DNA from: Mobula birostris
Taxonomy: Eukaryota
Length of the DNA stretch: 64,000 bases
Assembly: GCF_030028105.1 (NCBI RefSeq)
Contig: NW_027274036.1
Location: 496,001-560,000 of the forward strand
Direction of reading: 5' to 3'
Shown one piece after another: positions 5,993 through 61,094 of this stretch. Position 1 is the stretch's first letter, and every line of letters starts with the position of its first letter. Below the pieces are notes generated by a model. That model ran no database searches. It was not told where the DNA came from and was given only the letters and a program-made list of their open reading frames with translations. The translations under genes and the position numbers were made by a program.

Positions 5993-6032
5993 ATGATTGG
6001 AAAGTGGTATTTTCTCCTATCAATTCTGCAAG
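5993..6032 (+). CDS. Leader (signal peptide) exon [13 protein letters not shown]
   Basis: ATG at 5993, hydrophobic FLLSIL, phase-1 donor CAAG|gtacca. Joined to 6853 it gives [20 protein letters not shown], a plausible 17-aa signal peptide. An acceptor-like ttctcttttag ending at 5950 suggests an upstream non-coding exon. Confidence 0.65.
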
Positions 6033-9000
6033 GTACCAGCAACAGCAGCTCAGCTGATTAACTGTCAATGAGTTGGGATGGAAACTAATTTTGATAGAGG
6101 TTAACAGATTAGCACTCCCTTAAATATCCTTATAACACACATTGCTGCCATTCTGATTAGTGCTCCTTTAATTCTCCTTTAGTACTCCCACATTGCAGCC
6201 ATTCTGATTAGTGCTCCTTCAGTACACACACATTGTTGCCATTCTGATTAGTGCTTCTTTAATGCTCCTTTAGTACTCCCACATTGCAGCCATTCTGATT
6301 AGTGCTCCTTCAGTACACACACATTGTTGCCATTCTGATTAGTGCTTCTTTAATGCTCCTTTAGTACTCCCACATTGCAGCCATTCTGATTGTACAGAAA
6401 TCCAACAGTACTTGGAACCTACAGTTGTCCAGAGGCCACCCAGCAATCTCACGATTTAATCCTAGTCTATCAAGGGGCAATTTACAATGATCTACGAACC
6501 GGTATGTCTTTGGACAGTGGGAGGACGTGGTCATGGGGCAAATGTATAAACTTCTTACAGGCAGCAGCACGAATTGAACCCAGCTGGCTTGTACTGTAAA
6601 GCATTTTGCTGACCAATACGCTACCATGCTGCCTTATGTGGGATCTCCAGATTTGCAGTGCTGATAGTGGAGTATTGCTGGCATTGTTCTTGTGTCTGTG
6701 TAAACTCCTTCAGTATTACCACCATTACTGCATAGTGCTTACCAAGAATTCTGCAGTACTCTGAGTACACACCAACAGCAGTGTAACTCTGTCAACACTG
6801 AGGATCTTCTTCAATACTGTCTTGTTGCTTAATATTCATAATCTCTCCTCAGCTGTAGTGTCAGAGGAATGGACAGCCGACATTCAACAAGAAGTTACAG
6901 TGCGGAAGGGCCTGTGTGCACACATTCGGTGTCAATACAGCTATCCATCACGTCTGGCAAATGACCAACGGGTGGGAATCTGGTTTAACTCAAATAACCT
7001 GTTTTCATGGTCACAGATAGCCTTTCATTCCAAGAATAGCAGTCATATAATGCCAAAGTATCACCATCGGACCTGGCTCTCTGGAAACCTGAATGACAAG
7101 AACTGTTCCTTGAATATAAACAATGTTACACAGGAAGATGAAGGTCCTTATCACTTCAGAATTGAATTTAAAGACCTGGATCGCTATAGCTACTCCACCA
7201 TAACACAACTATGTGTTGATGGTAAGTGTTTTGTCTAATTATATAATGATAGACACTCAGCAGTCAGGGAGAAATGGCCAAACTGTGCTGATTTCCCAGT
7301 AACACAATTCACAAATCATTAATGCAGAATGGGATTATCAGTGACTTTGTTGTGCCTCCATCAGTGCTAACACAATCTCCAAATTCACTGTCTATGCTAT
7401 CATGTTATCTCCTTCACTTCTCTCTGTTATAAACTAAGTTACAGATGGACAACATTTTTACAGCACCCTTTATTTCCTCAGGATGTCTGAGCCTGCTTCC
7501 CAGTGTGGGTGGGCTCCATTAATGCCAGTGTGGGAACAGCCTGCTTCCCAGTGTGGCTGGGCTCCATTAATGCCAGTGTGGGAACAGCCTGCTTCCCAGT
7601 GTGGGTGGGCTCCATTAATGCTGGTATGGGAACAGCAAACAATATAGTGCAGCAATGCAGAGGGTCAAGCAGCATATGTGGCAGGAAAGGAATTTTTAAC
7701 ATTTCTAGTCAAAACCCTGCAACATTCTGTCCACTTCACAGCTCAATTTCCTGTCTATCACCAAACACAGCAGCCCATCTTGCAATCATCATTTTTGAGG
7801 TTAAAATAAAATGTAAGTCCCAGCACATCACACATTACCATCTAGACAAAATGACCTATTTATGCTAATACAGTCACTGGACATTAAGCACAGAAACTGT
7901 CCATTTAGTTCACCCTGTGCCGAGTCACGCCTGTCTGGTTCTGAAACACAGCTGTCTGTTCACCTCACAACAATTAACTTATCCAAATCTCCCCTATATG
8001 CTGCAATTCAGCCCCCATACACCACTTCTGTTGGCAGCTCTTTTCACACTTACATCACCTTCTGAGGGAAGACATTCTTCTTCAGATTTCTCTTAAATAT
8101 TTCACCTTTCACCCTGAAGCATTGGCCTCCAGTTGTAGTCTCACCCAACCAAAAAACATGCATGGATACACCCAATCTACATCCCTCATTACTTTGTATA
8201 CGTCTATATGATCTCCCCTCATTCTCCTGTATTCCAGGGAATAAAGTTCAGGAGGTCCACAAGTCCTGTCGATTTTCTCTGCATTCTTTTAAACTTATTG
8301 ATATATTTTCTATATTGTTTTTATTGGTTGGCTTATTTTACACAAAACAACATTAATTTTGTAGGTTTATATTACATAATTGGATCTTCCCAGCCTCTTC
8401 AAAAAAAGGCAACAATTATATCAGTGCTCAAGACTCTCTGTAATTTACCTATCACCACAGTAGGTCTATGGCAGGAATGATCTCAATGGCTCTTCACGTG
8501 GCCTTAGATCACCTGGACAATGCACACACCTCTGTCACAATGCTTTTATGTTGGCTATAGCTTAGCATTCAACACCATAATTCACACAGTTCTGATCGAT
8601 AAGCTACAGAACCTGGGCTTCTGTCCCTCTCTCTGCAAGTGGATTCTTGACCACAATCTGTGTGTATTGCTAATAATATCTCCTCCTCACTGATGACCAA
8701 CACTGGCACACCCCAAGGGCCCACTGTTCTTCTCTCTCGATACTCATGACTGTGTGACTCAAATGCCATTGATAAATTTGCTGATGATGCTACCATTATT
8801 CCTAGAATCTCAGATGGAGACGCTAGAGCATACAGGAGCAAAATATGCTAGCTAGTTGAGTGGTGTCGTACCAATAACCTTGCAATCAATGTCAGTAAGA
8901 TGAAAGAGCTGATTGTGAAGGATAAGATGAGGAAACATGAACCAATCCTCATAGAGGGATCAGAGTGGAGGGAGAGAGAGCAACTTCAAGTTCCTGGGTT

Positions 9001-12000
9001 TCAAGATCTCTGAGGATCTGACCTGGTCCCAACATATTGATGCAGCTATAAAGAAGGCAAGACAGCGGCTATATTTCATTAGGAGTTGAAGAGATTTTGT
9101 TTATCACCTAAAACACTCAAATTTCAATAGATATACCATGGAAAGCATTCTGACAGGCCACATCACTGTCTGGTATGGGTGGGTGCTACTGTACAGGACT
9201 GAAAGAACCTACAGAAAGTTGTAATATTAGTCAGCTCCATCTTGGGTACTAGCCTCCGTAATCTAAGACGTCTTCAAGGAGCGGTGCCTCAGAAAGGTGG
9301 CATCCATTATTAAGGACCCATCCCCCAGGGCATGCCTTCTTATTGTTACTGTCAGGAAGGAGGTGCAGAAGACTGAAGGCATACACTTAGCGATTCAGGA
9401 ACAGCTTCTTCCCCTCTGCAATCCAATTCCTAAAGGGACATTGAATCCATGAATATATATATATATATATATATATACACACTCTTATTTACCAATTTTT
9501 TTCCTATATTATGTATTGCATAGTAATGCTGCTACCGTTAACAAATTTCATGACTCATGCCGGTGACAATAAACCTGATTCTAATTGTTAATTTGCTTCT
9601 CCTTTGCCATCTAAAATCATAATAAGTGAGCAGACCCACCCTCCAGCTTTTCCAAGCTTCCTGCAGTTCCTCAACGTCACATAGTCACAGTTCAAACACT
9701 GCATAAACCTGAAAGCATGTACACTAGTCTTCAGTTGTTGTCAGACTCTTGAATGATAGGATGGACTGTTGACCTCAGCTACTTTGTTTTGATCCTGCAG
9801 TAAGTTTTTTACTTGCACTGCACTTTCTCTATAACTGTTGCTCTTTATTCTGCATTGTTATATTTTTGCCTTGTTTTACCTCAATGCACTGTGTAATGCT
9901 CTGTGTATACAAGCTTTTCACGTGACAATAATAAACCAATACTATGCACATTCAACTGCAAGGCCTTTAGATTTGTGTAACACCAGCCCTCTGGTGCACT
10001 TACTCTGTCATTTCCTGTCACAATCTGTTTCTCCTTTTCTATGTTTACACATCTGTTTTGTGACTTATTTCTACTTTTTGCTTTAACAATCTTTTCCAAC
10101 TTTGATCTCACTTCCTCCATAAATCCCACTATTTTGTTTAAAATCCTCGCAGAGAGAGGTGGGTGAGGGGTTTCAGTGCAAATTGTCTCCATTTGTTGTG
10201 ATAATTGCTAAATGTATATTGCAGAGACTCTGAGCCAGTGCTGCCTGAACAGGGAGCTGTGTCATCTCCCTAGCCTTGTCTGTTGAAGGTGCCCAGGCTG
10301 AATGTGAGGGAAACTCAGGAAACTCCCTAGCTCCAGGGCAATAGGACCATACAATTCTGTGAAGATTGAAGGTTGACAAGTCTGTCTGTTCTGAAGCACC
10401 TCATCCTTGGGTTTTGACAGCAGAAAGCTGTTGTTTTGGTTTTAATTTTCCACAGTTCACCGACATTGGGAAAGGTTGCATAAGATTGGAATGTTGCAAA
10501 GGTTTTTTTTCTCTCAAACAACAAGGAAGACATTGGGAGAGTACACATTAGGGAAAATAGTGGAAGCTATTATTGAAGATATTACAGGCAGAGCATTGGC
10601 TAGGTAAGAAGGTAAATAGGATTTTTACTGATTGACAAAATGGAATGCAAGTGTACACAGGGATAGGTAAAGAAAACAAAGATATGGTTGCAAATCTTTC
10701 AGAAGACTCCAAAGAAGAAAATTAACCTCTGAAGAGGAGGACACAAAGCATAAAGGTAGAGTATGGGCAAAGTGTGGTGAATAGAGTAAACCATGGAAAA
10801 CATGAAATAGACACCATTACAGCATAGAAACAAGCCCTTTGGCCCATCGAGTCCATGCTAAACTATTATTCTGCCTATTCCCAAGGGCCTACACATCGCC
10901 CTCCATACCCCTCCCATCCATGGATTTATCCATACTTCTCTTAAATGTTCAAATTAAACCCACATCCACTACTTCTGCTGGTAGCTCATTCCTCTGAGTG
11001 AAGAAATTTGCCCTCTTCCTCTTAAGTATTTCACCTTTCACCTTTAACATACGATCTCTACGTCTAGTCTCACCCACACTCAGTGAAGAAGGCCTTCCAT
11101 TTACCCTATCTATACCCTCATAATATAAAAAAAAGGTACGTCGTATCCAGAATTTTTCCAGTTAGCTGACGACTTCCTCCCACACTGCTCTGACGTAGCG
11201 GGAAATCACGTACGAGGCAAGTTACAGCAGTGGTTTGTCATTTTCTTTCTGCCAGGTGAGTTTTTAAAAGAGATCACCAGCTCATGAAATGCCTAAGCGT
11301 GCAGGGGAGCTGGCTGGATTCGAACTTGGGACCTCCCACCCCGCAGTCCAGCACTGATGCCACTATGCCACCAGCTGGGTCCCTCATAATATATACCTCT
11401 ACAAATCTCCTCTCATCTTCCTACGTTCCATGGAATTAAGTCTTACCCTATTCAACCTTCTACTACAACTCAGGTCCTCAAGTCCTGGTAACATTAGACA
11501 TTGAAGCAGAATTACACCACCTGGCCCATTGAGTCTTCTCCGCCATTTAATCATGGCTGATCCTTTGTTCCCCTCCTCAACCCCATTCCGCAGCCTGCTC
11601 CCTGTAACTTTTGATGCTGTATCCAATAAGAACCTATCAATGTCTGCATTAAATACACCTAACGACTTGGCTTCCACAGCTGCCTGTGAGAACAAATTCC
11701 ACAAATTCGCAACCTTTGGCTCAAGTCTGTTTTAGATGGACCCCCCCTATCCTGAAGCTGTGCCCTCTTGTCCTAGACTCCCCGACCATGGGAAACATCC
11801 TTGCCACATCTGCTCTGTCTAGGCCTTTCAACATTCAAAAGGTTTCAATGAGATCCCCCCTCATTCTTCTAAATTCCAGCGAGCACAGACCCAAAGCCAT
11901 CAAGCGTTCTTCGTATGATAACCCTTTCATTCCCGGAATCATCCTTGTGAACCTCCTCTGAACCCTCTCCAATGCCAGCACATCTTTTCTGAGATGAGGA

Positions 12001-15000
12001 GCCCATCCCTGCTCTTGAATTCAAGACCTCTTGAAATGAACGCTAACATGGCATTTGCCTTCCTCACCACTGACTCAACCTGCAAGTAAACCTTCAGGGT
12101 GTTCTGCACAAGCACTCCAAAATCCCTTTGCATCTCAGATTTTTGGATTTTCTGCCTGTCTAAAAAATAGTCTGCACATTTAATTCTAATTCCAAAGTGC
12201 ATGACCATGCATTTTCCAACATTATATTTCATTTGCCACTTTCTTGCCCATTCTCCAAATCTGTCTAAGTCCTTCTGCAACCTACCTGTTTCCTCAGCAC
12301 AGCTCCTCCACCAATCTTTGTATCATCTGGAAATGTGGCAACAAAGCCATCTGTCCCCATCACGTAATCATTGCTATACAGCATAAAAAGAAGTGGTCCC
12401 AACACTGACCCCTGTGGAAGACCACTTGTCACTGACAGCCAACCTTTTATTTCCACTCGCTGCCTCCTGCTAATCAGCCAATGCTGATAGGACATAGAAA
12501 CATAGAAAACCTACAGCACATTACAGGCCCTTCGGCCCACAAAGTTGTGCCAAACATGTCCCTACCTTAGAAATTACTAGGCTTACCTATAGTCCTCTAT
12601 TTTTCTAAGCTCCATGTACCTATCCAAAAGTCTCTTAAAAGACCCTATCATATCCGCCTCCACCACCATTGCTGGCAGCCCATTCCACGCACTCACCACT
12701 CTCTAAGTAAAAAACTTACCCCTGACATCCCCTCTGTACCTACTCCCCAGCACCTTAAACCTGTGCCCTCTTGTGGCAACCATTTCAGCCTGGGAAAAAG
12801 CCTCTGACTATCCACACAGTCAATGCCTCTCATCTATCAGGTCACCTCTCATCCTCCGTCGCTCCAAGGAGAAAAGGCCGAGTTCACTCAACCTATTCTC
12901 ATAAGGCATGCTCCCCAGCCCAGGTAATATCCTTGTAAATCTCCTCTGCACTCTCTCTAGAGTTTCCACATCCTTCCTGTAGTGAGGTGAACAGAACTGA
13001 GCACAGTTGTCCAAGTGGGGCCTGACCAGGGTCCTATATAGCTGCAACATTACCCCTCAGCTCCTAAACTCAATCCCATGATTGATGAAGGCCAATACAC
13101 CGTATGCCTTCTTAACCACAGAGCCAATCTGCGCAGCAGCTTTGAGTGTCCTATGGACTCGGACCTCAAGATCCTTCTGATTCTCCACACTGCCAAGAGT
13201 CTTACTATTAATACTATATCCTGGCATCATATTTGACTTACCAAAATGAATCACCTCACACTTATCTGGGTTGAACTCCATCTGCCACTTCTCAGCTCAG
13301 TTTTGCATCCTATCAATGTCCCGCTGTAATCTCTGATAGCCCTCGTCACTATCCACATGTAACCCTCAGGCTCGCCCGCTCGCATTCGTCTAGGGGTATC
13401 AGCTTTCGGCCCCGCCAAACTGTGTATTCACATTTATGTGGATGCTGTGTAATGTACTCCCAATTACAAACCCACAATGCAAAATATCAGACAGTACACC
13501 ATATGCAATTAAATGATAGACTTTATGAATCTTAATCTGAATATGGGGTTAGTATGAAAATAAACAAAACAAAATAAAAGTCCAAATTAAAGTCACAGTA
13601 TCAATTGGAGCTCACTCAGTAGACATTCCTCCACCACCAATCTCTGCCGAACGTTGCTGACCCTCGGATCCCAGCCTACGCCATCCGGTGGTCTACCAGC
13701 GCTCTCCACACGTGATCTTCCTCTTCCTCTCTCCTTGACAAAAAACTCCATGAAAACCTCAGCTCCCAGACACGCAAGAAAGAATAACATTTCTCCCATT
13801 GGATAGCCACTGAATTCCAAAGTCCCATTATCTCTAGTCATAACCCAAACATTTCTGCTACAGAGAAACCACTACCTCAGCAGTTAACATTATAGAGAAG
13901 CCATTACATTAGCCTTAGCAGCTAACATTACAGAGAAGCCATTACATTAGTTAACATTACAGAGAAGCCGTTACATACAACACCCCCAACCTTTGTGACA
14001 TCAACAAATTGACTAACCCATCCCTCCACTTCCTCATCCAGTCATTTATAAAAATCACGAAGAGTGGGGGTTCCAGAACAGATTCCTGAGGCACACTACT
14101 GGTCACCGACCTCCATGCAGAATATGACCTGTCTACAACCATTCTTTGCCTTCTGTAAGCAAGCTAATTCTGGATCCACAAAGCAAGGTCCCCTTGGATA
14201 CCATGCCTCCTTGCTTTCTCAATCAGCCTTGCATGGGGTACCTTGTCAAATGCCTTGCTGAAATCCACATACACTATGTCTATGGCTCTACCTTCATCAA
14301 TGTGTTTAGTCACATCCTCAAAAAATTCAATCAGGCTCGTAAGGCACGACCTGCCCTTGACAAAGCCATGCTGATTATTCCTAATCATATTATGCCTCTC
14401 CAAATGTCATTAAATCCTGCCTCTCAGGATCTTCTCCATCAACTTACCAACCACTGAAGTAAGACTCACTAGTCTATAATTTCCTGGGCTATCTCTACTC
14501 CCTTTCTTGAATAAGGGAATGACATCCACAACCCTCCAATCCTCCGGAACCTCTCCCGTTTCCACTGATGATGCAAAGATCATCGCTAGAGGCTCAACAA
14601 TCTCCTCCCTTGCTTCCTACAGCAGCCTGGGGTACATCTCGTCTGGTCCCAGTGACTTATCCAACTTGATGTCTTCCAAAAGCTCTGGCACATCCTCTTT
14701 CTTTCAAGCTCTTTAATCTGCTGTACCCTACGATCACCAAGATCCTCTTCCATAGTGAATACTGAAGCAAAGTATTCATTAAGTACCTCTGCTATCTCCT
14801 CCCGTTCCATACACACTTTTCCACTGTCACACTTGATTGGTCCTATTCTCTCACATCTTATTCTCTCACATCTTATTCTCTTGCTCTTCACATACTTGTA
14901 GAATGCTTTGTACTTCATCTTCCAGACCTTTGCTCATCTACTTAACCTATCTCTATCTCTCTGTAGACTGTCTGTATCCTCTGCACAATTTGCTCTTCCA

Positions 15001-18000
15001 TTCAATTTTGTGTCATCAGCAAACATTATACTCGGTCCCTCTTGCTGATCGTGAACAGTTGTGGCACACCACTCACCACTGATTGCCAACCAGGGAAACA
15101 CCCAACTCTCTGCTTTCTATTGGTTAACCGATCCTCTGTCCATGCTAATACATCACCCCGACTCTCTGCACCCTTAGCTTATGTGGCACCTTATCAAATG
15201 CCTTCTTGAAATCCAAGTAAATGATGTACATCTGTTCCCCTCTATACATTGTGCTCATTACTTCCTCAAAGAACTCCATTAAGTTTGTTAAACAGGACCT
15301 GCCTTTGCTGAATCCATGCTGTGTCTGCCAGATGGATCTATTTCTTTCCAGATGCCTTGCTATTTCTTCTTTATTGATAGCTTCAATCATTTTCCCAACT
15401 GCAGATGTTAAACTAACTGACCTATAGTGATCTGCTTTTTGTCTACATCCTGTTTTTGAACAGTGGCGTGACATTTTCCTTCTTTCAATCCGTCAGGATC
15501 TGCCCAGAGTCCACAGATTTTTGTTAAATTATCACCAAAGCATCTACAATGACCTCTGCCATTTCTTTCAGTACCCTGGGAAGCATTCCATCAGGACCAG
15601 GGGACTTGTCCAGCTTTAGGCCCACAAGTTTTCTCAGCACAACCTCTTTAGTGATAGCTGTTATATTGAGGTCCTCAGCTCTAATCACATTCATAACATC
15701 TCTCCTTGGCATGCTAGATGTGTCTTCCACCATGAAGTCCGACACAAAATAGTCATTCAAAGCCTTGGCCATTTCCTCATTACCCAATATCAATTCCCCC
15801 TTCTTATCCTCCAAGGACATTCATTTTAGCCATCCTTTTCCACTTTATATAATTATAAAAACTTTTACTAATCATTTTTATATTTTGTGCTAGTTTATTT
15901 TCATAATCTATCTTCCCTTTCTTTATTGCTCAGTTGGTGGTACTTTGTTGCTTTTTAAAGTTTTCCCAATCTTCCAGTTTCCCACTACTGTTGGCAACTT
16001 TGTACGCATGAGCTTTTAGTTTGTTGCCTTCCTTTATTTCCTTAGTTATCCATGGCTGGCTCTCCCCACCCTTACTGTCCTTGCTTTTAACTGGAATGTA
16101 CTTTTGCTGACCACCATGAAAATTCTCTTTCAAAGCCTTCCACTGTTCCTCAACCATTCCACCATATAGCCTGTGTTCCTAGTCTACCCATCAAATTCCT
16201 CCCTCAGCCCATTGTAGTCTCCCTTGTTTAGGCATAATACACTGGTTTTAGATCAAACTATTGCACCCTCCATTTGTATGAGAAACTCAGTCATACTATG
16301 ATCACTCTTTCCAAGAGGATCCCTAACTATGAGATTGCTAATTTTACCTGTCTCATTGCACAGGACCAGATCTAAAATAGCACATTCCCTTGCAGGTTCA
16401 GTAACATGTTGTTCAAGAAAGCCATCATGGATGCATTCTATGAAGTCCTCCTCAAGACTACCTCGACCAAATTGATTCACCCAATCTATGTGCAAGTTAA
16501 AGTCCCCCAAAATAACAATAACTCTTGTTCCATTTTTACATGCCTCAGGTATTTGTTGGTTTATTGTCTGTACCACTGTAATGTTATCATTTGGTGGCCT
16601 ACAGACAACTCACACAAGTGATTTTTTTTCTCCCATACTATTCATAATCTCTACCCAGACGGATTCAATATTTTGGTCCTTAGACCTGTCTCTGTCACCC
16701 TGATCTCAGAGCGCTACCCGACCTCCCTTACCTTCCTGCCTATCCTTCCGTATTACCTGATATCCTTGGATATTTAATTCTCAATCCTCTCCACTCTGTA
16801 ACCACGTTTCTGTAAAGTCCAGTAAATCATAGCTCTTTGTATTGATTTGTACTGACCTTGTTGTGGATACTACGGGCATTCAGATAAAGTGCCCTTACAC
16901 TCATTGTGCTTTTAAAATCTTGTATTCTTTGCCTACACTTTTCTACATTTTATCTATGCTTTTCTCTTTTACTTTATCCATACTTCTCCAATCTGTTGAA
17001 ACCACCCCCTATCCACAGCCCTAGTTATGCAATTTGCCAAGATCCAGGTCCCATGACTGTTCAGGTGGAGCCTGTACCATTGGAACAGTTCCCTCCTTCC
17101 CCAATACTGGTGCCAGTTTCCCATTAATTCAAACCCACTTCTCCCACATCAATCCTTGAGCCAGGCATTTAACTCTCTAACCTTCTTGACCCTGTGTCAA
17201 TTTCTGCGATTCAGGCAGTAATCCAGAGATTCCCACCTCTTTGATTCTGCTCTTTAACTTAGTCCCTAGCTGTTCAAATTCCCTCAGCAGAACCTATTTT
17301 CTCACTCTACTGATGTCGTTGATACCCACATGGACCATGGCAACTGGATCTTTCCTCTGCAGGTCAGATTAGATGTCCTGAACCCTGGCGTCAGGCAGGC
17401 AACACAGCCTTAGGGTCGCTCTCTCTCTGCGACAGAGAACTCTGTCTATTCCCCTGACTGTACTATCCCAATTACAACTATATTTCTCTTCTTTCCTCCC
17501 TCTTGAATGGTTCCCTGAACTATGGTGCCACAGTTAGGTTGCTCATCCTTCCTACAGCCCCCACTGTCATCCACACAGGGAGCAAGAATCTCAGACCTGT
17601 TAGACAAGCTCAAGGGCTGAGGGCCCTCCAGTGCTGTCTCTTGGATCCCACTACCTGCCTCACTCACAGTCACACCCTCTTGTCCCTGATCACTGACTGA
17701 ATTTGAGGCAGCTAATCGGATAGGTGTAACTAACCCTTGAAACAGAGAATCCAGGTAAATCTCCCCTCCCTGATGTGCTGTAGTGTTTGAAGCTTCGAGC
17801 CTGAGTTCCTCGAGCAGCCAACACTTGCTGCAGATGTGATCACCAGGAAACACAATGGGGTCCACCAGCTCACACATCATGCAGCTACAGCACATCGCCT
17901 GATCCTGCATCTTCCCTACTTTATTTAATTAGTTGTAGTTTGATGACACTTCTATTCAAACGCTACGAAAGCTTTACTGAGTATTCACCTGATCCTCTTC

Positions 18001-48000: not shown

Positions 48001-51000
48001 GCTGTCAGCTGAGGGATTAACTTTGGCCCAAAGACACTGGGAGAATTCACCTTTCTTTCTCTCTAACAGAAACATTGAGAATTTTTCTAGTCCTGGGGTG
48101 TGGGGGGAGAGGGGATGGTAGGGATTCAGTGTACTGACCTGCTGAAAGATGGGAACAACCTTGTGTAGCACCCACTTGGTACTGCTGATTGTACCCTTGA
48201 TCGATCGGGTCACACTCATAGAAACATAGAAAACCTACAGCACAATTTAGGTCCTTCAGTCTACAAAGCTGTGCCGAACATGTACTTACCTGAGAAATTA
48301 CCTAGGGTTACCCATAGCCCTCTATTTTTCTGAGCTCCATATACCTGCCCAGCAGTCTCTTGAAAGAACCTGTCATATCCGCCTCCACCACCGTCGCCGG
48401 CAGCCCAGTGCAGACACTTACCACGCTCTGCGTAAAAAACTTACCCCTGACATCTCCTCTGTACCTACTTCCAAGCACCTTAAAACGGTGTCTTCTCGTG
48501 TTAGCCCTTTCAGCCCTGGGAAAAGGCCTCTGACTATCCACACGATCAATGCCTCTCATCTTCTTGTACACCTGTATCAGGTCACCTCTCATACTGTGTC
48601 GCGCCAAGGAGAAAAAGCCAAGTTCACTCAACCTGTTCTCATAAGGCATGCTCCCCAATCCAGGCAACGCCTTTGTAAGTCTCCTCTGCACCCTTTCTAT
48701 GGTTTCTACATCCTTCCTATAATTAAGCAACCAGAACTGAGCACAGTACTCCAAGTGGAGTCTGACCAGGGTCCTCTATAGCTGCAACATTACCTCTCGG
48801 CTCCTAAACTCAGTCCCATGATTGATGAAGGCCAATGCACCATATGCTTTCTTAACCACAGTCAACCTGCGCAGCAGCCTTGAGTATCCTATGGACTCGG
48901 ACCCCAAGGTCCCACTGATCTTCCACACTGCCAAGAGTCTTACCATTAATACTATATTCTGTCATCATATTTGACCTACCAAAATGAACCACCTCACACT
49001 TATCTCGGTTTAACTCCATCTGCCACTTCTCAGCCCATTTTTGCATCCAACCTAATGTCCCACTGTAACCTCTGACAGCCCTCCACACTATCTACAATAC
49101 CTCCAACCTTTGTGTCATCAGCAAAGTTACTAACCCATCCCTCCACTTCTTCATCCAGGTCATTTATAAAAATCACAAAGAGTTGGGGTCCCAGAACAGA
49201 ATCCTGAGGCACAACCTCCATGCAGAATATGATCGGTATACAACCACTCTTTGCCTTCTATGGGCAAGCCAGTTCTAGATCCACAAAGCAATGTCCCCTG
49301 GGATCCCATGCCTCCTTACTTTCTCAATAGGCCTTGCACGGGGTACCTTGTCATATGCCTTGCTGAAATCCATATAAACTACATCTACTGCTCTACTTTC
49401 ATCAATGTGTTCAGTCACATCCTCAAAAAATTCAATCAGGCTCGTAAGGCACGACCTGCTTTTGACAATTCCTAATCATATTATGCCTAAGGCATGCTGA
49501 CTATTCCTAATCATATTATGCCACTCAATCACAGAGTCATTAAAAAATTTGCAACACAGGAGGCAGTTATGTAAAGAACAAAAGGATGACAGGAGTGAAG
49601 GTAGGACCGATTAGAGATAAAGGTGGGAAGATGTGCCTGGAGGCTGTGGAAGTGAGCGAGGTCCTCAATGAATACTTCTTTTCGGTATTCACCAGTGAGA
49701 GGGAACTTGACGACAGTGAGGACAATATGAGTGAGGTTGATGTCCTGAGCATATTGATATTAAGAGAAAGGAGGTGTTGGAGTTGTTAAAATACATTAGG
49801 ACGGATAAGTCCCTGGGGCCTGACGGAATATTCCGCAGGCTGCTCCACGAGGCAAGGGAAGAGATTGCTGAACCTCTGGCTAAGATCTTTATGTCCTCAT
49901 TGTCCACAGGTATGGTACCGAAGCACTGGAGGGAGGCAAATATTGTCCCTTTTTTCAAAAAAGCTAGTAGGGATAGTCTGGGTAATTATAGACCAGTGAG
50001 TCTTACGTGTGTGGTGGGAAAGCTGTTGGAAAAGATTCTTAGGGATAGGATCTGTGGGCACTTAGAGAATCATGGTCTGATCAGGGACAGTCAGCATGGC
50101 TTTGTGAAGGGCAGATCGTGTCTAACAAGCCTGATAGAGTTCTTTGAGGAGGTGACCAGGCATATAGATAAGGGTAGTGCAGTGGATGTGATCTACATGG
50201 ATTTTAGTCAGGCATTTGACAAGGTTCCACATGACAGGCTTATTCAGAAAGTCAGAAGGTATATGATCCAGGGAAGTTTGGCCAGATGGATTCAGAATTG
50301 GCTTGAATGCAGAAGGCAGAGGGTCGCGGTGGAGGGAGTATATTCGGATTGGAGGGCTGTGACTAGTGGTGTCCCACAAGGGTCGGTTCTGGGACCTCTA
50401 CTTTTCGTGATTTTTATTAAAGACCTGGATGTGGGGGTAGAAGGGTGGGTTGGCAAGCTTGCAGACGACACAAAGGCTGGTGGTGTTGTATATGGTGTAG
50501 AGGGTTGTCGAAGATTGTAGAGAGACATTGATAGGATGCAGAAGTGGGCTGAGAAGTGGCAGATGGAGTTCAACTTGGAGAAGTGTGAGGTGGTACACTT
50601 TGGAAGGACAAACTCCAAGGAAGAGTACAAAGTAAATGGCAGGATGCTTGTAGTGTGGAGGAGCAGAGGGATCTGGCGGTACATGTCCACAGATCCCTGA
50701 AAGTTGCCTCACAGGTAGATAGGGTAGTTAAGAAAGCTTATGGGGTGTTAGCTTTCATAAGTCGAGGGATGGAGTTTAAGAGTCACAAGGTAATGATGCG
50801 GCTCTATAAAACTCTGGTTAGACCACACTTGGAGTACTGTGTCCAGTTCTGGTCACCTCACTATAGGAAGGATGTGGAAACATTGGAAAAGGTACAGAAG
50901 AGATTTACCAGGATGATGCCTGGTTTAGAGAGTATGGATTATGACCAGAGATTAAGGGAGTTGGGGTTTTACTCTTTGGAGAGAAGGAGGATGAAAGTAG

Positions 51001-54000
51001 ACATGATAGAGGTATACAAGATATTAAGAGGAATAGATAGAGCAGACAGCCTGCGCCTCTTCCCCAGGGCACCACTGCTCAATACAAGAGGACATTGCTT
51101 TAAGGTAAGGGGTGGGAAGTTCAAGGGGGATATTAGAGGAAGGTTTTTTTACTCAGAGAGTGGTTGGTGCGTGGAATGCACTGCCTGAGTCAGTGGTGGA
51201 GGCAGATACACTCGTGAAATTTAAGAGACTGCTAGATAGGTATATGGAGGAATTTAAGGTTGGGGGTTATATGGGAGGCAGGGTTTAAGGGTCGGCACAA
51301 CATTGTAGGCCGAAGGGCTTGTACTGTGCTGTACTATTCTATGTTCTAAGTTCTAATTCAGCCTATTGATTTTGTGCTGCTTTCAACTTGGTTCCACTTC
51401 CGGCAGCTGTAGCTTCAAAATCAAGTTCTTTGTCAGATGCACAAATCCATGTGTGCACGTGTGCAATGCAAAATGTGCCTGCAGCAGCATCAGGGGCACA
51501 CTGCATCATTCACAAGCACGCATCCCAATACTGTGTAAATATGTTGAGGGTTTTCAAAGAAATAAAGATTAGTTTTATTTGTCACATGTACATTGAAGCA
51601 TACAGTGAAATGTGCTGTTTGTTCAATGACCAACACAGTCCAAGAATGTGCAGGGGCAGCCCACAAGTGTTGCCATGCTGCTGGCATCAACATAGCATGC
51701 CTATAACTTACTAACCCTAACCCTAACCAAGTCTTTGGAAGATGAGAGGAAAGCAAATCACCTGTGCAGTAATAAGGAGAATGTACAAACTCTTTACAGA
51801 GAGCAGACCCTGCTAAGTGATCACTGGGGATGTAATGCTGCCTCCAACCTTCCCCTTTGGTGAATCCCAGACCCCATCTAAACTGTGCCAAAATTGTCTT
51901 GGTATAAAGGACGTGATCTTGTGCTGAAAATTCTGGATTAAGACTCAAAACCACAATTAACTGTTTAACAGATCATTGTCTGTCATTGTCAGACTGAAAT
52001 CACCTTGCCCAGTTTACTAATCAATGATATCATCTGCAGTAGCGTGTTCTGTCAGGAACCCTTATTGTGTTTGGTGGCCTTACAGGGGCTGCAAAGGAAT
52101 TGTTTTCTGGCCTATCCCTTGTCATGGGCAGCCCTTGCATAAACTGTTCACTAGCACTAGCGGTAATAGAGGCATTTAGCGTGTCTTTCAAAGAAAACAC
52201 CAACCGATAAATGGCAAAGTTTTGTAGGCTGCCAGAGAGAGCAGCGTTTACAAACTTTGGCTCAAGGCTTTAGTGAAGAAGCACAGGCGAGTAGCCGGTA
52301 AAACTTTTGTAGTGGTTGAATAAATAAGTCGTCAAATTACAACTAATTAAATAAAGTAGGGAAGATGCAGGATCAGGCGATGTGCTGTAGCTGCATGATA
52401 TGAGAGCTGGTGGACCCCATTGTGTTTCCTGGTGATCACATCTGCAGCAAGTGTTGGCTGCTCGAGGAACTCAGGCTCAAAGTTGATGACGCAGTGCTTC
52501 AAACACTACAGCACATCAGGGAGGAGAGAGTTACCTGGATTCTCTGTTTCAGGAGGTAGTCAACATCCATTAAATTAGCTGCCTCAAATTCAGTCAGTGG
52601 TCAGGGACAAGAGGATGTAACTGTGAGTGAGGTGGGTAGTGGGATCCAAGAGACAGTGCAGGAGGAGCCTCAACCCTTGAGCTTGTCCAACAGGTCTGAG
52701 ATTTTTGCTTCCTGTGTGGATGGGAGTGGGGGCTGTAGGTAGGATGAGCAACCTAACTGTGGCACCATAGTTCAGGGAGCCATTCAAGAGGGGGGAGAGA
52801 AAAGAAATGTAGTGGTAATTAGGAATAGTATAGTCAGGGGAATGAATAGAGTTCTGTGTCACGGAGATAGAACATCCCTAAGGCTGCGTTGCCTTCCTGG
52901 TGCCCAGGTTCAGGACATCTTATCTGATTTGCATAGAAATTTACAGTTGGAGGGGAAAGATCCATTTGCCGTGGTCCACGTGGGTACCAACAACATAGGT
53001 AGAATGAGGACAAAGGTTCTGCTGAGGGAATATGAGCAGCCAGGGACTAACTTAAAAAGTAGGACCAAAAATATGGAAATCTCTCGATTACTACCTGAGC
53101 CACGGGCAAATTGGCATAGTGTCAAGAAGATTAAAGAGTTAAATGTGTGGCTGAAGGATTGGTGTGGGAGAAATGGGTTTGAATTGATGGGAAACTGGTA
53201 CTGGTATTGGGGAAGGAGGGAATTGTTCCTTTGGGACAGGCTCCACTTGAACCTTGATGGCACCTGGATCCTGGCGATTGTGGATAGGGCTTTATAAATA
53301 GCATGGGGGTGGGTTCAAAAGATAGGTGAAGCTTGGATAAAGTAAAAGAGAAAAGCATGGATAAAGATGAAGTAAAAGCAAAAGTGAAAAAAGAGAAAAA
53401 TAAGGGTGGAGTGCAGAAAAGTCAAGTGCATAACAGACAAAGATTACAAGGTTTCAAAGGCACGATGAGTGTAAGGGCACTTTATCTGAATGCCCATACT
53501 ATTCGTAAGAAAGTCAGTGAGCTTGTGGCACAAATCAGTACAAAGGGGTGTGACTTAGTGGGCATTACAGAAATGTGGTTGCAGGATGGAGAGGATTAGG
53601 AATTAAATATCCAAAGGTATCAGGTAATACGGAAAGATAGGCAGGAAGGTAAGGTAGCACTCTTAATTAAGGATGAGATCAAGGCAATAGTGAGAGATGA
53701 TATATGATCTAAGAGGCAGAAAGTTGAATCCATCTGAGTAGAGATTAGTAATAGTAAAGATAAAAAAAGTACTGGTGGGAGTTATTTATCGGCCACTGAA
53801 TAACATTACAGTTATTCAGTGGATTTTCAAAAGGCTTTTGGCTTTTGGGTTTTCAAAAGGCTTTTGACAAGGTCCCACACAGGAGATTGGTGTGCAAGCT
53901 TAAAGCACACGGTATTGAGGGTAGGGTATTGATGTGGATAGAGAATTGGTTGGCAGACAGGAGCAAGGAGTGGGAATAAACGGGACCTTTTCAGAATGGC

Positions 54001-60000: not shown

Positions 60001-61094
60001 TGTCGTGTTAACGATGAGTCCCGGCTTTTCGAAGGACATGTCCCGGCTCTTCGAAGGACATGTCCCGGCTCTATGTTGGTGTTCAGTTTCTCAGCTCCAG
60101 CCTCCGAGTTATCAGCCTCCGCATTTCAAGACAAAGATCCCACAGCCAAGCTCCAAGAACCCAAGCCTCGAAGATCCCGCAGCCACGCTCCAAGAACCCA
60201 AGCCTCAAAGATCCTGCAGCCAAGCCTCAAGAACCCAAGCCTCAAAGATCCCGCAGCCAAGCTCCAAGAAACCAAGCCTCGAAGATCCTGCTGCCAAGCT
60301 CCAAGAACCCAAGCCTGGCGGATCCCACAGCCAAGCTCCAAGAACCCAAGCCTCGAGGATCCCAAGCCAAGCTCCAAGATCACTAGCCTTGAGGGTCCCA
60401 AGCCAAGCTCCAAGAACACTAGCCTCGAAGATTCCAAGCCAAGCTCCAAAAGCACAAGCCTCGAAGATCCCAAGCTCCAAGAACACAAGCCTGAAGTCCC
60501 CAGCCTCCAAGCTCATGACCTAAGGCCCCAGCCTGCAGCCAAGCTCAAGACCCAAGACCCCAGCCTGCAGCCAAGCTCAAGACCCAAGACCCCAGCCTCA
60601 AGCTTCAAGAGCAAAGACCCCAGTCTGTCTCCAAGCTCAGGCCTCTAAACCCAAGCCACGTCCTGTCCTGAAGCCATGTCATGTCAAGGCCTGGTTCTGG
60701 GGTCCGAGCCCAAGGCAAGACCCAGGTTCTGGGTCCTTGTAAGTCTCGGGCTTGGAGTCGAAGCCTTGTCTCCTTGTCTATTGTTTCTAGTCCAAGTCCT
60801 GCTTTCCCTAGCTGAAGTCTGCATTCTTGTCCCTGCTCCTGGTCTGAATCCTGTCCCGCCCCTACTCTAGTCAAGTCCTGTTCCTTGTACTTCAGTGTCT
60901 GTGTCTTGCATTTGGGTCTGTTCCCAATGCCCCATTGTGACATAGTCATGCTAATTGTACCCAACTCCTCTCTTTTGTTGCAGGAGAAGGCAAAGAAAGA
61001 TCCAGAATACAAACTGAACTGGAATGAGAATGAAGATCACAATGTGTATGAAAACTTCCACTTTGATGAGGATTCGATATATGTGAACATGTAA
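5993..61094 (+). CDS. Siglec/CD33-like type I receptor, 9 coding exons: leader-V-V-V-V-C2-TM-cytoplasmic tail, predicted 703 aa
   Basis: Exons 5993-6032, 6853-7221, 19794-20138, 20783-21142, 34310-34666, 35041-35334, 37430-37550, 47540-47654, 60984-61094. All junctions are GT-AG with phases 1,1,1,1,1,1,2,0. Total 2112 nt, open to TAA at 61092-61094. Domain motifs are Siglec-type. Manual model with no transcript support. Confidence 0.75.
6105..6392. repeat. Intronic minisatellite, alternating ~40/51-bp units (~91-bp dimer)
   Basis: Repeated CACATTG(C/T)(A/T)GCCATTCTGATTAGTGCT(C/T)CTT. Confidence 0.85.
6465..6635 (-). mobile_element. tRNA-derived V-SINE/HE1-like SINE fragment
   Basis: B-box-like GGTTCAATTC on the - strand and a core resembling cartilaginous-fish SINEs; a related copy lies at about 51565-51810. 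Confidence 0.55.
6853..7221 (+). CDS. Siglec-type V-set exon V1 (essential Arg present)
   Basis: ORF 6822..7238: GLCAHIRC...W...RTWLSGN...[20 protein letters not shown]...RYSY. The B and E strand cysteines and the lack of an F-strand Cys are Siglec hallmarks. Acceptor ctcctcag|CT (alternative ctgtag|TG at 6859), donor G|gtaagt. Confidence 0.9.
7490..7636. repeat. 3 x 48-bp minisatellite
   Basis: AGCCTGCTTCCCAGTGTGG... starts at 7490, 7538 and 7586. Confidence 0.9.
8660..9585 (+). mobile_element. Degenerate Rex1/Babar-like LINE 3' portion, with an (AT)n microsatellite at about 9453-9477
   Basis: KFADD...YR...WC..NNL..NVSK.KELIV pattern; tail ends AATAAACCTGATTCT. Confidence 0.6.
10812..11120 (-). 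mobile_element. CR1 3' end fragment
   Basis: Reverse-complement CR1 3' UTR and terminal ORF2 sequence. Confidence 0.6.
11125..11380 (-). mobile_element. tRNA-headed SINE
   Basis: Minus strand TGGCATAGTGG (A box) and GTTCGAATCC (B box), followed by a body containing GACAAACCACTGCTGTAAC. Confidence 0.65.
11385..15000 (-). mobile_element. Stack of antisense CR1 ORF2 fragments (at least 2 elements; tail at about 12495), split by a solo LTR
   Basis: ORFs with [27 protein letters not shown] and [13 protein letters not shown] motifs. Confidence 0.85.
13358..13975. mobile_element. Solo LTR (618 bp) inserted in CR1 RT
   Basis: TGTAAC...GTTACA termini, 4-bp TSD CACA/TACA (one mismatch). CR1 sequence resumes in register on both sides. 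Short internal tandem repeat at about 13865-13970. Confidence 0.7.
15000..18100 (-). mobile_element. CR1 element with 5' UTR, ORF1 (Cys-rich zinc-finger region plus esterase start) and deleted ORF2
   Basis: 17446..17910 [11 protein letters not shown]...HICSKC; 16253..16576 endonuclease GDFNLHIDW; 15145..15820 RT N-terminus. Homologous inverted copy at about 52250-53800. Confidence 0.8.
18420..19480 (-). mobile_element. Degenerate CR1 RT fragment
   Basis: ORFs 18581..18802 and 19200..19406 ([10 protein letters not shown]). Confidence 0.7.
19794..20138 (+). CDS. Siglec-type V-set exon V2 (Arg replaced by Lys)
   Basis: ORF 19793..20155: GLCAFIPC...GIWLKDEC...[27 protein letters not shown]. Acceptor ctgtag|, donor G|gtgagt, 345 nt, phase 1-1. 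Confidence 0.88.
20783..21142 (+). CDS. Siglec-type V-set exon V3 (essential Arg present)
   Basis: ORF 20758..21222: GMCAWIPC...[27 protein letters not shown]...QYSY. Acceptor tttttcatctgtag|, donor G|gtaagt, 360 nt, phase 1-1. Confidence 0.9.
21380..21570. mobile_element. Penelope-type inverted fragment with decayed hammerhead motif
   Basis: Minus strand 21435-21472 reads cagtgCTGATGAAGGCTCTCAGGCCAAAACGCCgactg; a partial opposite-strand copy follows. Confidence 0.5.
21895..34007. repeat. Intronic 32-bp satellite (consensus ~GAGGGGAGATACTGAGGGACACCACACTGTCA), about 7.3 kb excluding the Tx1 insert, with higher-order repeats
   Basis: 32-bp periodicity (e.g. 30141 and 30173). Near-exact 260-bp duplication at 30301 and 30561. 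The variant ACATACTGAGCTAACATCA recurs along the array. Confidence 0.95.
22773..27570 (+). mobile_element. 5'-truncated Tx1-clade (L1 group) non-LTR retrotransposon with ORF1 remnant and nearly complete ORF2
   Basis: ORF1 remnant ends TAG at 23802. ORF2 from 23815: APE domain (SLNVNG, FLQETH, GGDFN), RT ([18 protein letters not shown]) and C-terminal CHFC...H...C. Two frameshifts (about 24290 and 26280) and a TGA at 25737. AATAAA plus poly(A) at 27545-27570. TSD AGAGGGGAG at 22764-22772 and 27570-27578. Confidence 0.9.
34310..34666 (+). CDS. Siglec-type V-set exon V4 (Arg replaced by Lys)
   Basis: ORF 34309..34683: GLCARIPC...WMKDEC...[27 protein letters not shown]...RHSY. Acceptor ctcctctgtgcag|, donor G|gtgagt, 357 nt, phase 1-1. 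Confidence 0.9.
35041..35334 (+). CDS. Siglec-type C2-set Ig exon
   Basis: (D)FTDKPSIFP...[18 protein letters not shown]...GQNLTCRV...TVTLTVR. It carries the extra Cys that pairs with the V-domain GLC cysteine in Siglecs. Acceptor tctgtgttag|, donor T|gtaagt. Confidence 0.9.
35470..37330. repeat. ~57-bp minisatellite interrupted by a hAT element
   Basis: Units CAGTGCTACAGTG(C/T)TGTACTCTATTGGTACTGCCACTCCCACTGTGCAGCACTCCCT start at 37031, 37088, 37144 and 37201. Confidence 0.9.
35707..36939 (-). mobile_element. Non-autonomous Charlie/Buster-type hAT DNA transposon
   Basis: TIRs CAGGGGTCTCCAACC and GGTTGGGGACCGCTG; 8-bp TSD CTCTATGG/CTCTCTGG. The minus strand at about 36430-36700 carries a transposase C-terminal remnant ([11 protein letters not shown]...[12 protein letters not shown]...GKQAQGSH). 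A CR1 3' end is embedded at about 36090-36330. Confidence 0.85.
37430..37550 (+). CDS. Transmembrane exon (L)[39 protein letters not shown](R)
   Basis: Not in the ORF track; translated by hand. Polypyrimidine tract then ccaacag| in phase 1, about 24 uncharged hydrophobic residues followed by a basic stop-transfer RCR, donor AG|gtgagt in phase 2. Confidence 0.82.
38892..39687 (-). mobile_element. Solo LTR of the same Gmr1-type family as 3299-4146
   Basis: High identity along its length by eye; 4-bp TSD TCTG (38888-38891, 39688-39691) within a satellite unit. Confidence 0.92.
39738..40071 (+). mobile_element. Severely 5'-truncated L1-type 3' end
   Basis: 12-bp TSD AACACACAGGGG (39726-39737, 40072-40083). 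Short terminal reading frame [10 protein letters not shown]-rich 3' UTR and A-rich end. Confidence 0.6.
44310..47380 (+). mobile_element. Mosaic of degenerate CR1 fragments and a Rex1/Babar-like RT fragment (about 45040-45680)
   Basis: 45347..45556 [22 protein letters not shown]; 45854..46255 [16 protein letters not shown]. Confidence 0.7.
47540..47654 (+). CDS. Cytoplasmic exon 1 (R)[38 protein letters not shown]
   Basis: Unique sequence among repeats. Acceptor tcttttcag| in phase 2 matches the TM exon; donor CAG|gtgaca in phase 0 matches the last exon. Overlaps ORF 47583..47822. Confidence 0.68.
48217..49520 (-). mobile_element. CR1 3' portion with (ATAGAAAC) tail
   Basis: ORFs 48308..48754, 48852..49088 and 49030..49221. 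Confidence 0.85.
49540..51350 (+). mobile_element. 5'-truncated CR1 (RT and C-terminus)
   Basis: 49774..50520 RT ending LADDTK; 50655..51188 C-terminal domain; TTCTATG tail. Confidence 0.88.
51565..51810 (-). mobile_element. SINE fragment (V-SINE/HE1-related)
   Basis: Shares the GTCTTTGG...ATGTACAAACT segment with 6465-6635. Confidence 0.5.
52250..53820 (+). mobile_element. CR1 5' portion: ORF1 with SGNH esterase domain and start of the ORF2 endonuclease
   Basis: 52812..53297 (SIVRG...CLPGA...VVHVGTNN); LYLNA...GITE.WL in 53333..53599. Confidence 0.82.
53820..55032 (+). mobile_element. Young CR1 3' portion
   Basis: 53934..54161 and 54199..54933; (CTATGTTT)n tail. Nearly identical to the inverted copy at 61332-62540. 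Confidence 0.9.
55033..55900 (-). pseudogene. L1 ORF1 (coiled coil plus RRM/CTD) remnant with 5' UTR
   Basis: [30 protein letters not shown] and YPARL motifs. An N-terminal segment from about 55806 is separated by a stop. Confidence 0.85.
55900..59235 (+). mobile_element. Tandem sense CR1 fragments, with an antisense Rex1-like 3' end inserted at about 57177-57547
   Basis: ORFs 56404..56640, 56707..56940, 57576..57764, 57983..58351 and 58842..59135; tails at about 58510 and 59225. Confidence 0.8.
59263..60942. mobile_element. 1680-bp LTR-like element with internal ~37-bp tandem repeat
   Basis: TGTCA...TGACA termini; 5-bp TSD TAGTC (59258-59262, 60943-60947). CCAAGCTCCAAGAACCCAAGCCTCGAAGATCC repeats at about 60135-60650. 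Confidence 0.75.
60984..61094 (+). CDS. Terminal coding exon [36 protein letters not shown]
   Basis: Branch-point-like gctaat at about 60949, pyrimidine tract, ttgcag| in phase 0. Acidic tyrosine motifs typical of immune receptor tails. Ends ORF 60885..61094. Confidence 0.8.
   Translation, partial: EKAKKDPEYKLNWNENEDHNVYENFHFDEDSIYVNM

Follow-up and report, generated by a model that had tools for sequence, protein, structure and literature searches.

Textbook Siglecs have a single lectin domain of the variable (V) set of immunoglobulin (Ig) domains, and Siglec-12, with two V domains, is treated as an oddity. The CD33-related members combine a single V-set domain with either a cytoplasmic tail bearing an immunoreceptor tyrosine-based inhibitory motif (ITIM) or an ITIM-like motif, or a charged residue in the transmembrane (TM) segment. 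Sialic-acid binding requires the Arg of the YxFR motif, and Siglecs that have lost it do not bind (PMC13358205, PMC6288428). Here we describe a gene of this kind from the giant manta ray, Mobula birostris, located in a 64,000-nucleotide stretch of contig NW_027274036.1 (assembly GCF_030028105.1, positions 496,001 to 560,000 of the forward strand; hereafter the window, numbered from its first letter). On the plus strand of the window lies a nine-exon gene that consists of a leader exon, four V exons (V1-V4), one C2 exon, one TM exon, and two tail exons. The evidence supports its interpretation as one Siglec-type gene with four V exons followed by a C2, a TM, and a tail. The manta protein has neither the tail nor the TM residue typical of the CD33-related Siglecs.

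The leader exon (5993-6032) encodes 13 residues plus one base and ends with a phase 1 donor (AAG/GTACCA); it is the sole leader-like match in the window. The V exons follow on the same strand at 6853-7221 (V1), 19794-20138 (V2), 20783-21142 (V3), and 34310-34666 (V4), with V3 starting just 644 bp downstream of V2. The C2 exon (35041-35334) is of the Siglec domain-2 type and contains the motif NLTCRV. The TM exon (37430-37550) encodes 40 residues with a hydrophobic span free of charged residues. The first cytoplasmic exon (47540-47654, 38 residues) is 77-85% identical in tblastn to Hemitrygon orthologues, and the second (60984-61094) contributes 36 residues with YxN motifs, a terminal YVNM, and the stop codon. 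The TM exon and both tail exons, all on the plus strand as well, were located by homology-guided tblastn with stingray proteins. The window contains no runs of N. A hidden Markov model (HMM) made from the four V exons and searched against every stop-free six-frame segment of the window yielded exactly four matches (E from 1e-59 to 4e-68), none other scoring below E = 1, and a search with the C2 exon returned a single C2. Each V exon matches both the Pfam V-set family (PF07686) and Ig_CD22 (PF24518), the first Ig domain of Siglecs, over the curated cut-offs; the fifth Ig exon matches C2-set_2.

Every internal exon boundary carries AG/GT, all Ig exons are of phase 1-1, and the spliced open reading frame (ORF) of nine exons encodes 703 amino acids. 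This splice, to which the single leader belongs, is identical at 703 of 703 residues to the RefSeq protein XP_072106005.1 of M. birostris, annotated as "uncharacterized protein". The initial sequence-only reading of the window had placed four stop-free Siglec-type V exons between one leader and one C2-TM-tail set, and the HMM, Pfam, and splice analyses bear this out. Its claim of compatible phases and a 703-residue ORF also stands, the length being exact, and the exon bounds and splice sites agree with the three junctions it had proposed (7221-19794, 20138-20783, and 21142-34310). Since phase 1-1 is the rule for Ig-domain exons, compatible splice phases are in themselves uninformative here.

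Stingray chromosomes hold clusters of related genes with gene ranges of 127-607 kb, so one could propose that several genes, or a cluster in decay, share the window and that unnoticed leader or TM exons lie among the V exons. However, no second leader, C2, TM, or tail was detected by tblastn with orthologous proteins, and each of these elements matches the window once. A mechanical leader scan, which recovers the true leader, produced no candidate in the V2-V3, V3-V4, and V4-C2 introns. In the V1-V2 intron it gave a few weak candidates, and the one nearest V2 falls in sequence that is repeated elsewhere in the window. One TM-like match at 18156-18260 (E = 0.58) was rejected, as it directly follows a stop and has just seven hydrophobic residues. 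The several-genes explanation could also point to an in-frame ATG 25 bases before the V3 acceptor (20758-20782), which is conserved in Mobula, Hypanus, and Hemitrygon and opens the peptide MLLLFSSVA or MFLLFSSVA; the equivalent ATG lies at 35904 of the Hypanus locus (L001) and at 9965 of the Hemitrygon locus (L002). The hydrophobic core of this nine-residue peptide is too short, and MLLLFSSVA was therefore rejected as a signal peptide; it probably reflects translation of the polypyrimidine tract. In Hemitrygon, RefSeq model XP_072914621.1 begins at a Met within V3 and has no signal peptide. Phylogenetic footprinting was unhelpful in the search for hidden exons, since the introns align almost throughout at about 88% identity. 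The expectation that no extra leader, C2, or TM exon lies between the V exons is thus upheld by the HMM, tblastn, leader scan, and TM inspection, and we find the several-genes explanation hardly credible.

Another scenario retains one gene but denies V2-V4 a role in it: these could be decaying duplicate exons joined by a gene predictor, the real product being a CD33-like protein with V1 and C2. It would agree with the absence of the essential Arg from V2 and V4, with the loss of the Arg and of six residues from the stingray V3, with exon substitution rates near those of introns, and with one Hemitrygon model that splices V1 straight to C2. The comparison of the window with the Hypanus locus argues otherwise. 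The two loci align through most introns, with 88.3% identity at ungapped columns and 11.7 gap events per kb. As many as 128 of the 158 gaps are not multiples of three, giving 9.5 frameshifting gaps per kb, and a random 355-column intron window escapes frameshifts in only 1.6% of cases. The four V exons contain no stop between manta and Hypanus, and their sole gaps are 3 and 18 bases long; Hemitrygon akajei likewise has intact V2, V3, and V4. If the exons are taken as independent, the chance of four frameshift-free V exons is about 7e-8. Thus, the V exons have been kept as coding sequence, remaining in frame in two families of Myliobatiformes where few intron stretches stay frameshift-free. The ratio of nonsynonymous to synonymous substitution rates (dN/dS) in the V exons is 0.48-0.84, that is, below one, all splice sites are intact, and the Lys found at the Arg position is fixed rather than variable. 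All four V exons are under coding constraint, yet fast-evolving; fast evolution is usual for Siglec V domains. We consider decay of V2-V4 a highly improbable explanation.

Orthologues with the same architecture are present in other rays. In a profile search of 1.84 billion representative proteins, the best match was a protein aligning in four stretches (694 bits). The orthologue from Mobula hypostoma (XP_062913366.1, 701 residues, named "sialic acid-binding Ig-like lectin 12", Siglec-12) contains four V domains in the same order. The Hypanus sabinus protein XP_059838704.1 (655 residues, named "Siglec-8") is an orthologue with four V domains, C2, and TM, and XP_059815055.1 of the same species also has this composition. 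XP_072106005.1, XP_062913366.1, and XP_059838704.1 are all automatic models with automatic names. Each V domain of the window is closest to the V domain of the same position in the four-V proteins of M. hypostoma and Hypanus, V1 being 84% identical to Hypanus V1 at the amino acid level. The Hypanus locus contains V1, V2, V3, V4, C2, and TM in the same order and shares the short introns of the manta gene, about 0.6 kb between V2 and V3 and about 0.35 kb between V4 and C2. Intact V2 orthologues are found at 34976-35314 in the Hypanus locus and at 8090-8428 in the Hemitrygon locus.

The four V domains differ in the residues of the sialic-acid site. V1 has the Arg (YHFR, in YHFRIEF), the A-strand Trp, and the G-strand motif RYSY. 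In V2 the Arg is replaced by Lys (YYFK, in YYFKIEF), the A-strand Trp is absent with Ser in its place, the G strand reads QFVH, and an extra Cys is found in KDEC. V3 of Mobula has the Arg (YTFR, in YTFRIKF), the A-strand Trp, the G-strand motif QYSY, and an extra Cys in YPSC of the BC loop. V4 again has Lys for Arg (YYFK, in YYFKIAS) and an extra Cys in KDEC, with the A-strand Trp present and RHSY in the G strand. Mutagenesis of sialoadhesin reportedly showed that the change from Arg to Lys markedly lowers binding. The V1 Arg is conserved in Mobula, Hypanus, and Hemitrygon, and so are the Lys residues of V2 and V4; the A-strand Trp and G-strand Tyr of V1 are kept in all species checked. The stingray V3 (35931-36269 in the Hypanus locus and 9995-10333 in the Hemitrygon locus) has Ser for Arg and lacks six residues (SHLPVA) in the region of strand C', whereas the manta V3 is complete and keeps its Arg. 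These changes may represent a lineage-specific loss of a second lectin site.

Alignments with solved structures place the same residues opposite the known ones. The best relative of V1 is the Siglec-7 V-set (E = 1.8e-16), in which the V1 Arg lies opposite the Arg of YFFRMEK. For V2 it is the sialoadhesin V-set, with the V2 Lys opposite R97 (NFRFE), and V4 together with C2 aligns to CD33 domains 1-2 (E = 9e-25), with the V4 Lys opposite the Arg of FFRMERG. The best solved relatives overall are CD33, Siglec-10, -5, -8, and -7, MAG, and sialoadhesin. The essential F-strand Arg is thus found in V1, as expected of a ligand-binding Siglec domain, but not in all four domains, as a quadrupled lectin would need. 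Because the Trp/Arg/Tyr set is kept by V1 in every species and is incomplete in V2 and V4, V1 appears to be the only dependable sialic-acid site. V3 may be a second site in mantas, and V2 and V4 are probably not canonical lectin domains. The sequence-only reading had proposed a CD33-like receptor whose lectin module was quadrupled, possibly for multivalent glycan reading. One Siglec-type gene with four V exons stands, and quadrupling of the lectin does not, the Arg being present in V1 and V3 only. Multivalent glycan reading is therefore a weak proposal, and a stalk or spacer role for V2 and V4, or other ligands, seems the better one.

By fold, motifs, and nearest relatives, the gene product belongs to the Siglec family as judged from its sequence. 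Its N-terminal domain is a Siglec-type V-set according to Pfam and the nearest solved relatives. At the sequence level it also has the Siglec Cys pattern for a predicted intra-sheet disulfide between strands B and E and a predicted V-to-C2 disulfide: GLCxxIxC and (N/D)CSL are found in all four V domains, and each of the three Cys in the C2 segment SCTFNITC ... LTC has its counterpart in the alignment with CD33 domain 2. The domain order differs from that expected of a Siglec, namely four V-sets and then one C2 rather than one V-set followed by C2-set domains. The tail (47540-47654 and 60984-61094) contains no canonical ITIM or immunoreceptor tyrosine-based switch motif (ITSM), the nearest approach to (I/V/L/S)xYxx(I/V/L) being SIYVNM, and the TM segment offers no charged residue for DAP12. 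What the tail does contain is three YxN motifs (YTN, YEN, and YVN); the terminal YVNM also fits YxxM and resembles motifs of the CD28/DAP10 type. Hemitrygon paralogues have a tail of the same type (...NVYENF...SIYANM). Three features therefore set the protein apart from described Siglecs, namely the four V-sets, the lack of an ITIM, and the absence of charge in the TM helix.

Another proposal would be a receptor that is Siglec-derived and not sialic-acid-based, its tandem V chain binding a protein or other ligand in the manner of the polymeric immunoglobulin receptor (pIgR). Using the full-length model as a query, Foldseek returned pIgR ectodomains as the top matches, and NCBI calls one shark relative "polymeric immunoglobulin receptor-like". 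The lack of an ITIM and of the Arg in two or three of the four domains would be natural for such a protein. However, the template modelling scores (TM-scores) to pIgR are low (0.23-0.34), and the structural match, as far as the model can tell, reflects a chain of Ig domains. At the sequence level, pIgR chains match only partially (E from about 5e-7 to 3e-6), far more weakly than CD33 (E = 9e-25), which does not indicate kinship with pIgR, and the Arg, A-strand Trp, and G-strand Tyr of V1 are kept in all species checked. We judge a receptor without any sialic-acid function to be unlikely.

The history of the four V exons as a Siglec-type array was addressed with a tree of 75 V domains of rays and sharks, in which no mammalian sequences were included. 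Each window V domain groups with the V domain of the same position from M. hypostoma, Hypanus, and Hemitrygon, where modelled (Shimodaira-Hasegawa-like approximate likelihood ratio test, SH-aLRT, 96-100). V1 is sister to V3 (SH-aLRT 87), and V2 groups with V4 (SH-aLRT 81). The introns alternate in length: long, short, long, short. This spacing fits duplication of a two-exon unit, V-A/V-B, before the manta and stingray families split. All ray V domains are apart from all shark V domains, which suggests a lineage-specific origin, and sharks would have built their own multi-V arrays independently. The same 1.0-Mb contig also carries a single-V relative, the M. birostris 'CD33-like' protein, in which Lys occupies the Arg position (YIFKVE). 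Its long branch joins V2 and V4 in the tree, and a kinship with exons of the V-B type is possible.

Among the 258 proteins that we retrieved, tandem Siglec-type V arrays are widespread in sharks. Models with two V domains occur in Mustelus, Cetorhinus, Carcharodon, Chiloscyllium, Hemiscyllium, Pristiophorus, and Scyliorhinus; three V domains are found in Scyliorhinus canicula, S. torazame, and Mustelus. Among sharks, four V domains are found in S. canicula, and one model from S. torazame has six. A Xenopus "Siglec-12" model contains three adjacent, weaker V-like domains. The sequence-only reading knew of no described Siglec with this layout, and novelty is not supported, given that the same model is in RefSeq already and models with two, three, four, or six V domains are annotated in many sharks; wide annotation of this kind is what that reading had itself named as grounds for rejection. 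It had also suggested a search of cartilaginous-fish proteomes for four V domains with one C2, and the protein searches made here returned such models from M. hypostoma, Hypanus sabinus, and M. birostris. A full-text literature search yielded no paper describing elasmobranch multi-V Siglecs, although most subscription journals are outside the reach of that search, which makes it weak evidence of absence.

A further feature of the arrays is an extra Cys. Among close-family domains, it is present in 33 of 37 non-first V domains, as against 1 of 121 that are first or single (Fisher p = 2e-28, without correction for kinship). Its position is YPSC of the BC loop in sharks and in ray V3, and KDEC in ray V2 and V4. 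The first B-strand Cys, which in CD33 forms a bond to domain 2, is kept in all four V domains. The ectodomain of M. hypostoma has 18 Cys, an even number, and that of M. birostris has one more, in QLCVD. The distribution of the extra Cys would fit interdomain stapling and hence domains that sit in one chain. AlphaFold2 (AF2) with a 29-sequence alignment predicts five beta domains, with predicted local distance difference test (pLDDT) values mostly of 70-86, a disordered tail, a helix over leader residues 3-15, and a TM helix at 593-626. One may go further and picture a rod in which the four V domains are covalently joined by extra Cys paired with the Siglec interdomain Cys, an arrangement that would have evolved independently in rays and sharks. 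In manta, the rod would alternate lectin-competent V1 and V3 with lectin-dead V2 and V4, and the CD28/DAP10-like YxNM tail, in place of an ITIM, would make it an activating or co-stimulatory multi-V Siglec. Taken in full, this picture is a tentative one, and we regard it as rather unlikely.

The explanation that we prefer is less specific. The gene would encode a CD33-like Siglec receptor with type I membrane topology. Its ectodomain would be a V1-V4 chain on one Siglec-type C2; the TM helix after it is uncharged, and the tail contains YxN motifs and YVNM. The chain would have arisen by duplication of the V-A/V-B unit prior to the split of the manta and stingray families. V1 would serve as the dependable sialic-acid site, with V3 maybe a second one in mantas. 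V2 and V4 would most likely form a stalk lifting V1 off the membrane, or else surfaces for other ligands, and the extra Cys of the non-first V domains may pair with the unpaired interdomain Cys of the neighbouring V, stapling the chain. As a whole, comprising one four-V Siglec-like gene, its origin, and a V1-based mechanism, this explanation appears reasonably probable. In our opinion, the four-V protein is likely to be a real major product in which V1 functions as the lectin domain.

Several observations weigh against this explanation. The presence of four V exons in one mRNA rests on gene models. No fragment spanning any V-V junction was found among RNA assemblies (Logan) in the protein collections searched by a word-indexed method with V2 alone, the Hypanus four-V protein, and residues 100-300 of the manta protein as queries. 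The sole Logan cluster matched was an unrelated single-V protein and was discarded. Hypanus models from paralogous or unresolved loci contain V1 and V4, or V1 alone; Hemitrygon models contain V1 and C2, or V3 and V4; and isoform models of the catshark use different subsets of V. The V exons are 86-92% identical between manta and Hypanus as compared with 88% for introns, so that substitution rates are about equal. Four well-supported independent contrasts on the tree gave three concordant and no discordant cases for the extra Cys, which is not significant (sign test, p = 0.25). The KDEC Cys follows strand C, which by V-domain topology would be at the membrane-proximal end, and the proposed pairing is tentative. 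The predicted template modelling score (pTM) of the AF2 model is 0.36, and the domain packing it suggests is unreliable.

In a rival explanation, the V exons are cassettes, the 703-residue form being one, perhaps minor, isoform and the usual proteins having one to three V domains as a result of exon skipping. With all Ig exons in phase 1-1, any subset of V exons stays in frame, and the Cys count remains even after skipping of any non-first V. The catshark provides an example: isoforms X1, X2, and X3 of one 242-kb S. canicula gene have in common the leader, the last V, and a C-terminal part of 318 identical residues, and differ in having four or three V domains, for which six or more distinct V exons are used. 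Models of this family thus include alternative V-exon usage. For the stingrays, the models with V1+V4, V1+C2, or V3+V4 could be cited in the same sense, but they come from other loci or span 127-607 kb and are perhaps chimeric. In particular, a Hemitrygon akajei model on CM108213.1 (gene range 607 kb) and a Hypanus model (127 kb) join leader-V1 to a distant C2-TM-tail, and such long-range models may be chimeras across a gene cluster, which makes the stingray counts of one-V and two-V forms unreliable. In addition, M. birostris and M. hypostoma are on record with the four-V model only, and the splice sites of V2 and V4 are still strong, and their reading frames preserved, in each of three genera. 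The cassette explanation is possible, if somewhat unlikely, and we keep the four-V receptor as the preferred one.

The long introns of the manta gene consist of recent filling. The V3-V4 intron contains a satellite with a 32-bp unit (21922-22772 and 27570-34007, about 225 copies, 72-76% matches), split by a long interspersed nuclear element (LINE) with endonuclease and reverse transcriptase (RT) ORFs at about 22773-27569; the orthologous intron is about 1.5 kb long in Hemitrygon and about 29 kb in Hypanus. The intron between TM and tail holds a satellite with a 33-bp unit (38267-38892 and 40161-44310, about 128 copies), which yields long spurious ORFs on both strands (e.g. 40293-40973). A 37-bp tandem repeat with nine copies and 87% matches (60134-60471) precedes the last coding exon by about 500 bp and gives overlapping Pro/Lys/Ser-rich ORFs in three frames, and the leader-V1 intron has a 91-bp tandem repeat (6135-6391, 2.8 copies, 98% identical). 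Retroelement remains surround and interrupt the gene at 1329-2693 and 62430-63986 on the minus strand and at 49774-51188 on the plus strand. The upstream element has a gag-like ORF with SCAN and CCHC zinc-knuckle domains, and LINE endonuclease/RT ORFs are found downstream of the gene and in the tail intron.

Based on the four-V form in two ray families and the models with two to six V domains in many sharks, tandem V arrays look like a regular, repeatedly evolved Siglec-like design in cartilaginous fishes. Its apparent rules are an extra Cys in the non-first V domains and an essential Arg that is kept in V1 and lost in some inner domains. The practical weight of the finding is modest, as the gene is in RefSeq already, duplication of Ig exons is common in immune receptors, and function is read from sequence. 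Its value lies in a pointer for comparative glycoimmunology and in correction of the automatic names "Siglec-12", "Siglec-8", and "uncharacterized protein".

Among known systems, CD33 and Siglec-5, -7, -8, and -10 provide the best-matching solved structures, and the manta protein shares with them the CxxxxC motif, the E-strand Cys, and the positions of the C2 Cys. Primate Siglec-12 (Siglec-XII) is a CD33-related Siglec that, like the manta protein, has more than one N-terminal V-set domain (PMC6288428), and in both the essential Arg is missing from some domains or species. They differ in that Siglec-12 has two V-sets, several C2 domains, and an ITIM tail, whereas the manta protein has four V-sets, one C2, and a YxN/YVNM tail. 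Because the ray V domains cluster among other Siglec-like V domains of rays, the name "Siglec-12" given to the M. hypostoma orthologue reflects layout and not shown orthology. The pIgR is likewise a type I receptor with an ectodomain chain of V-type Ig domains, but it has neither the Siglec Cys pattern nor the YxFR motif, and the sequence likeness is weak and partial. The closest systems are the four-V models of M. hypostoma and Hypanus, which share the order V1-V2-V3-V4-C2-TM; the Hypanus model XP_059838704.1 has a different short tail and a V3 with Ser for Arg and a six-residue deletion. The shark multi-V models form a separate clade from rays, keep the Arg in nearly all V domains, and in several cases have further C2 domains and tails of the LxYAxINF type. 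They resemble the manta protein in their tandem Siglec-type V domains without a linker and in the extra BC-loop Cys found in nearly every non-first V, as in manta V3.

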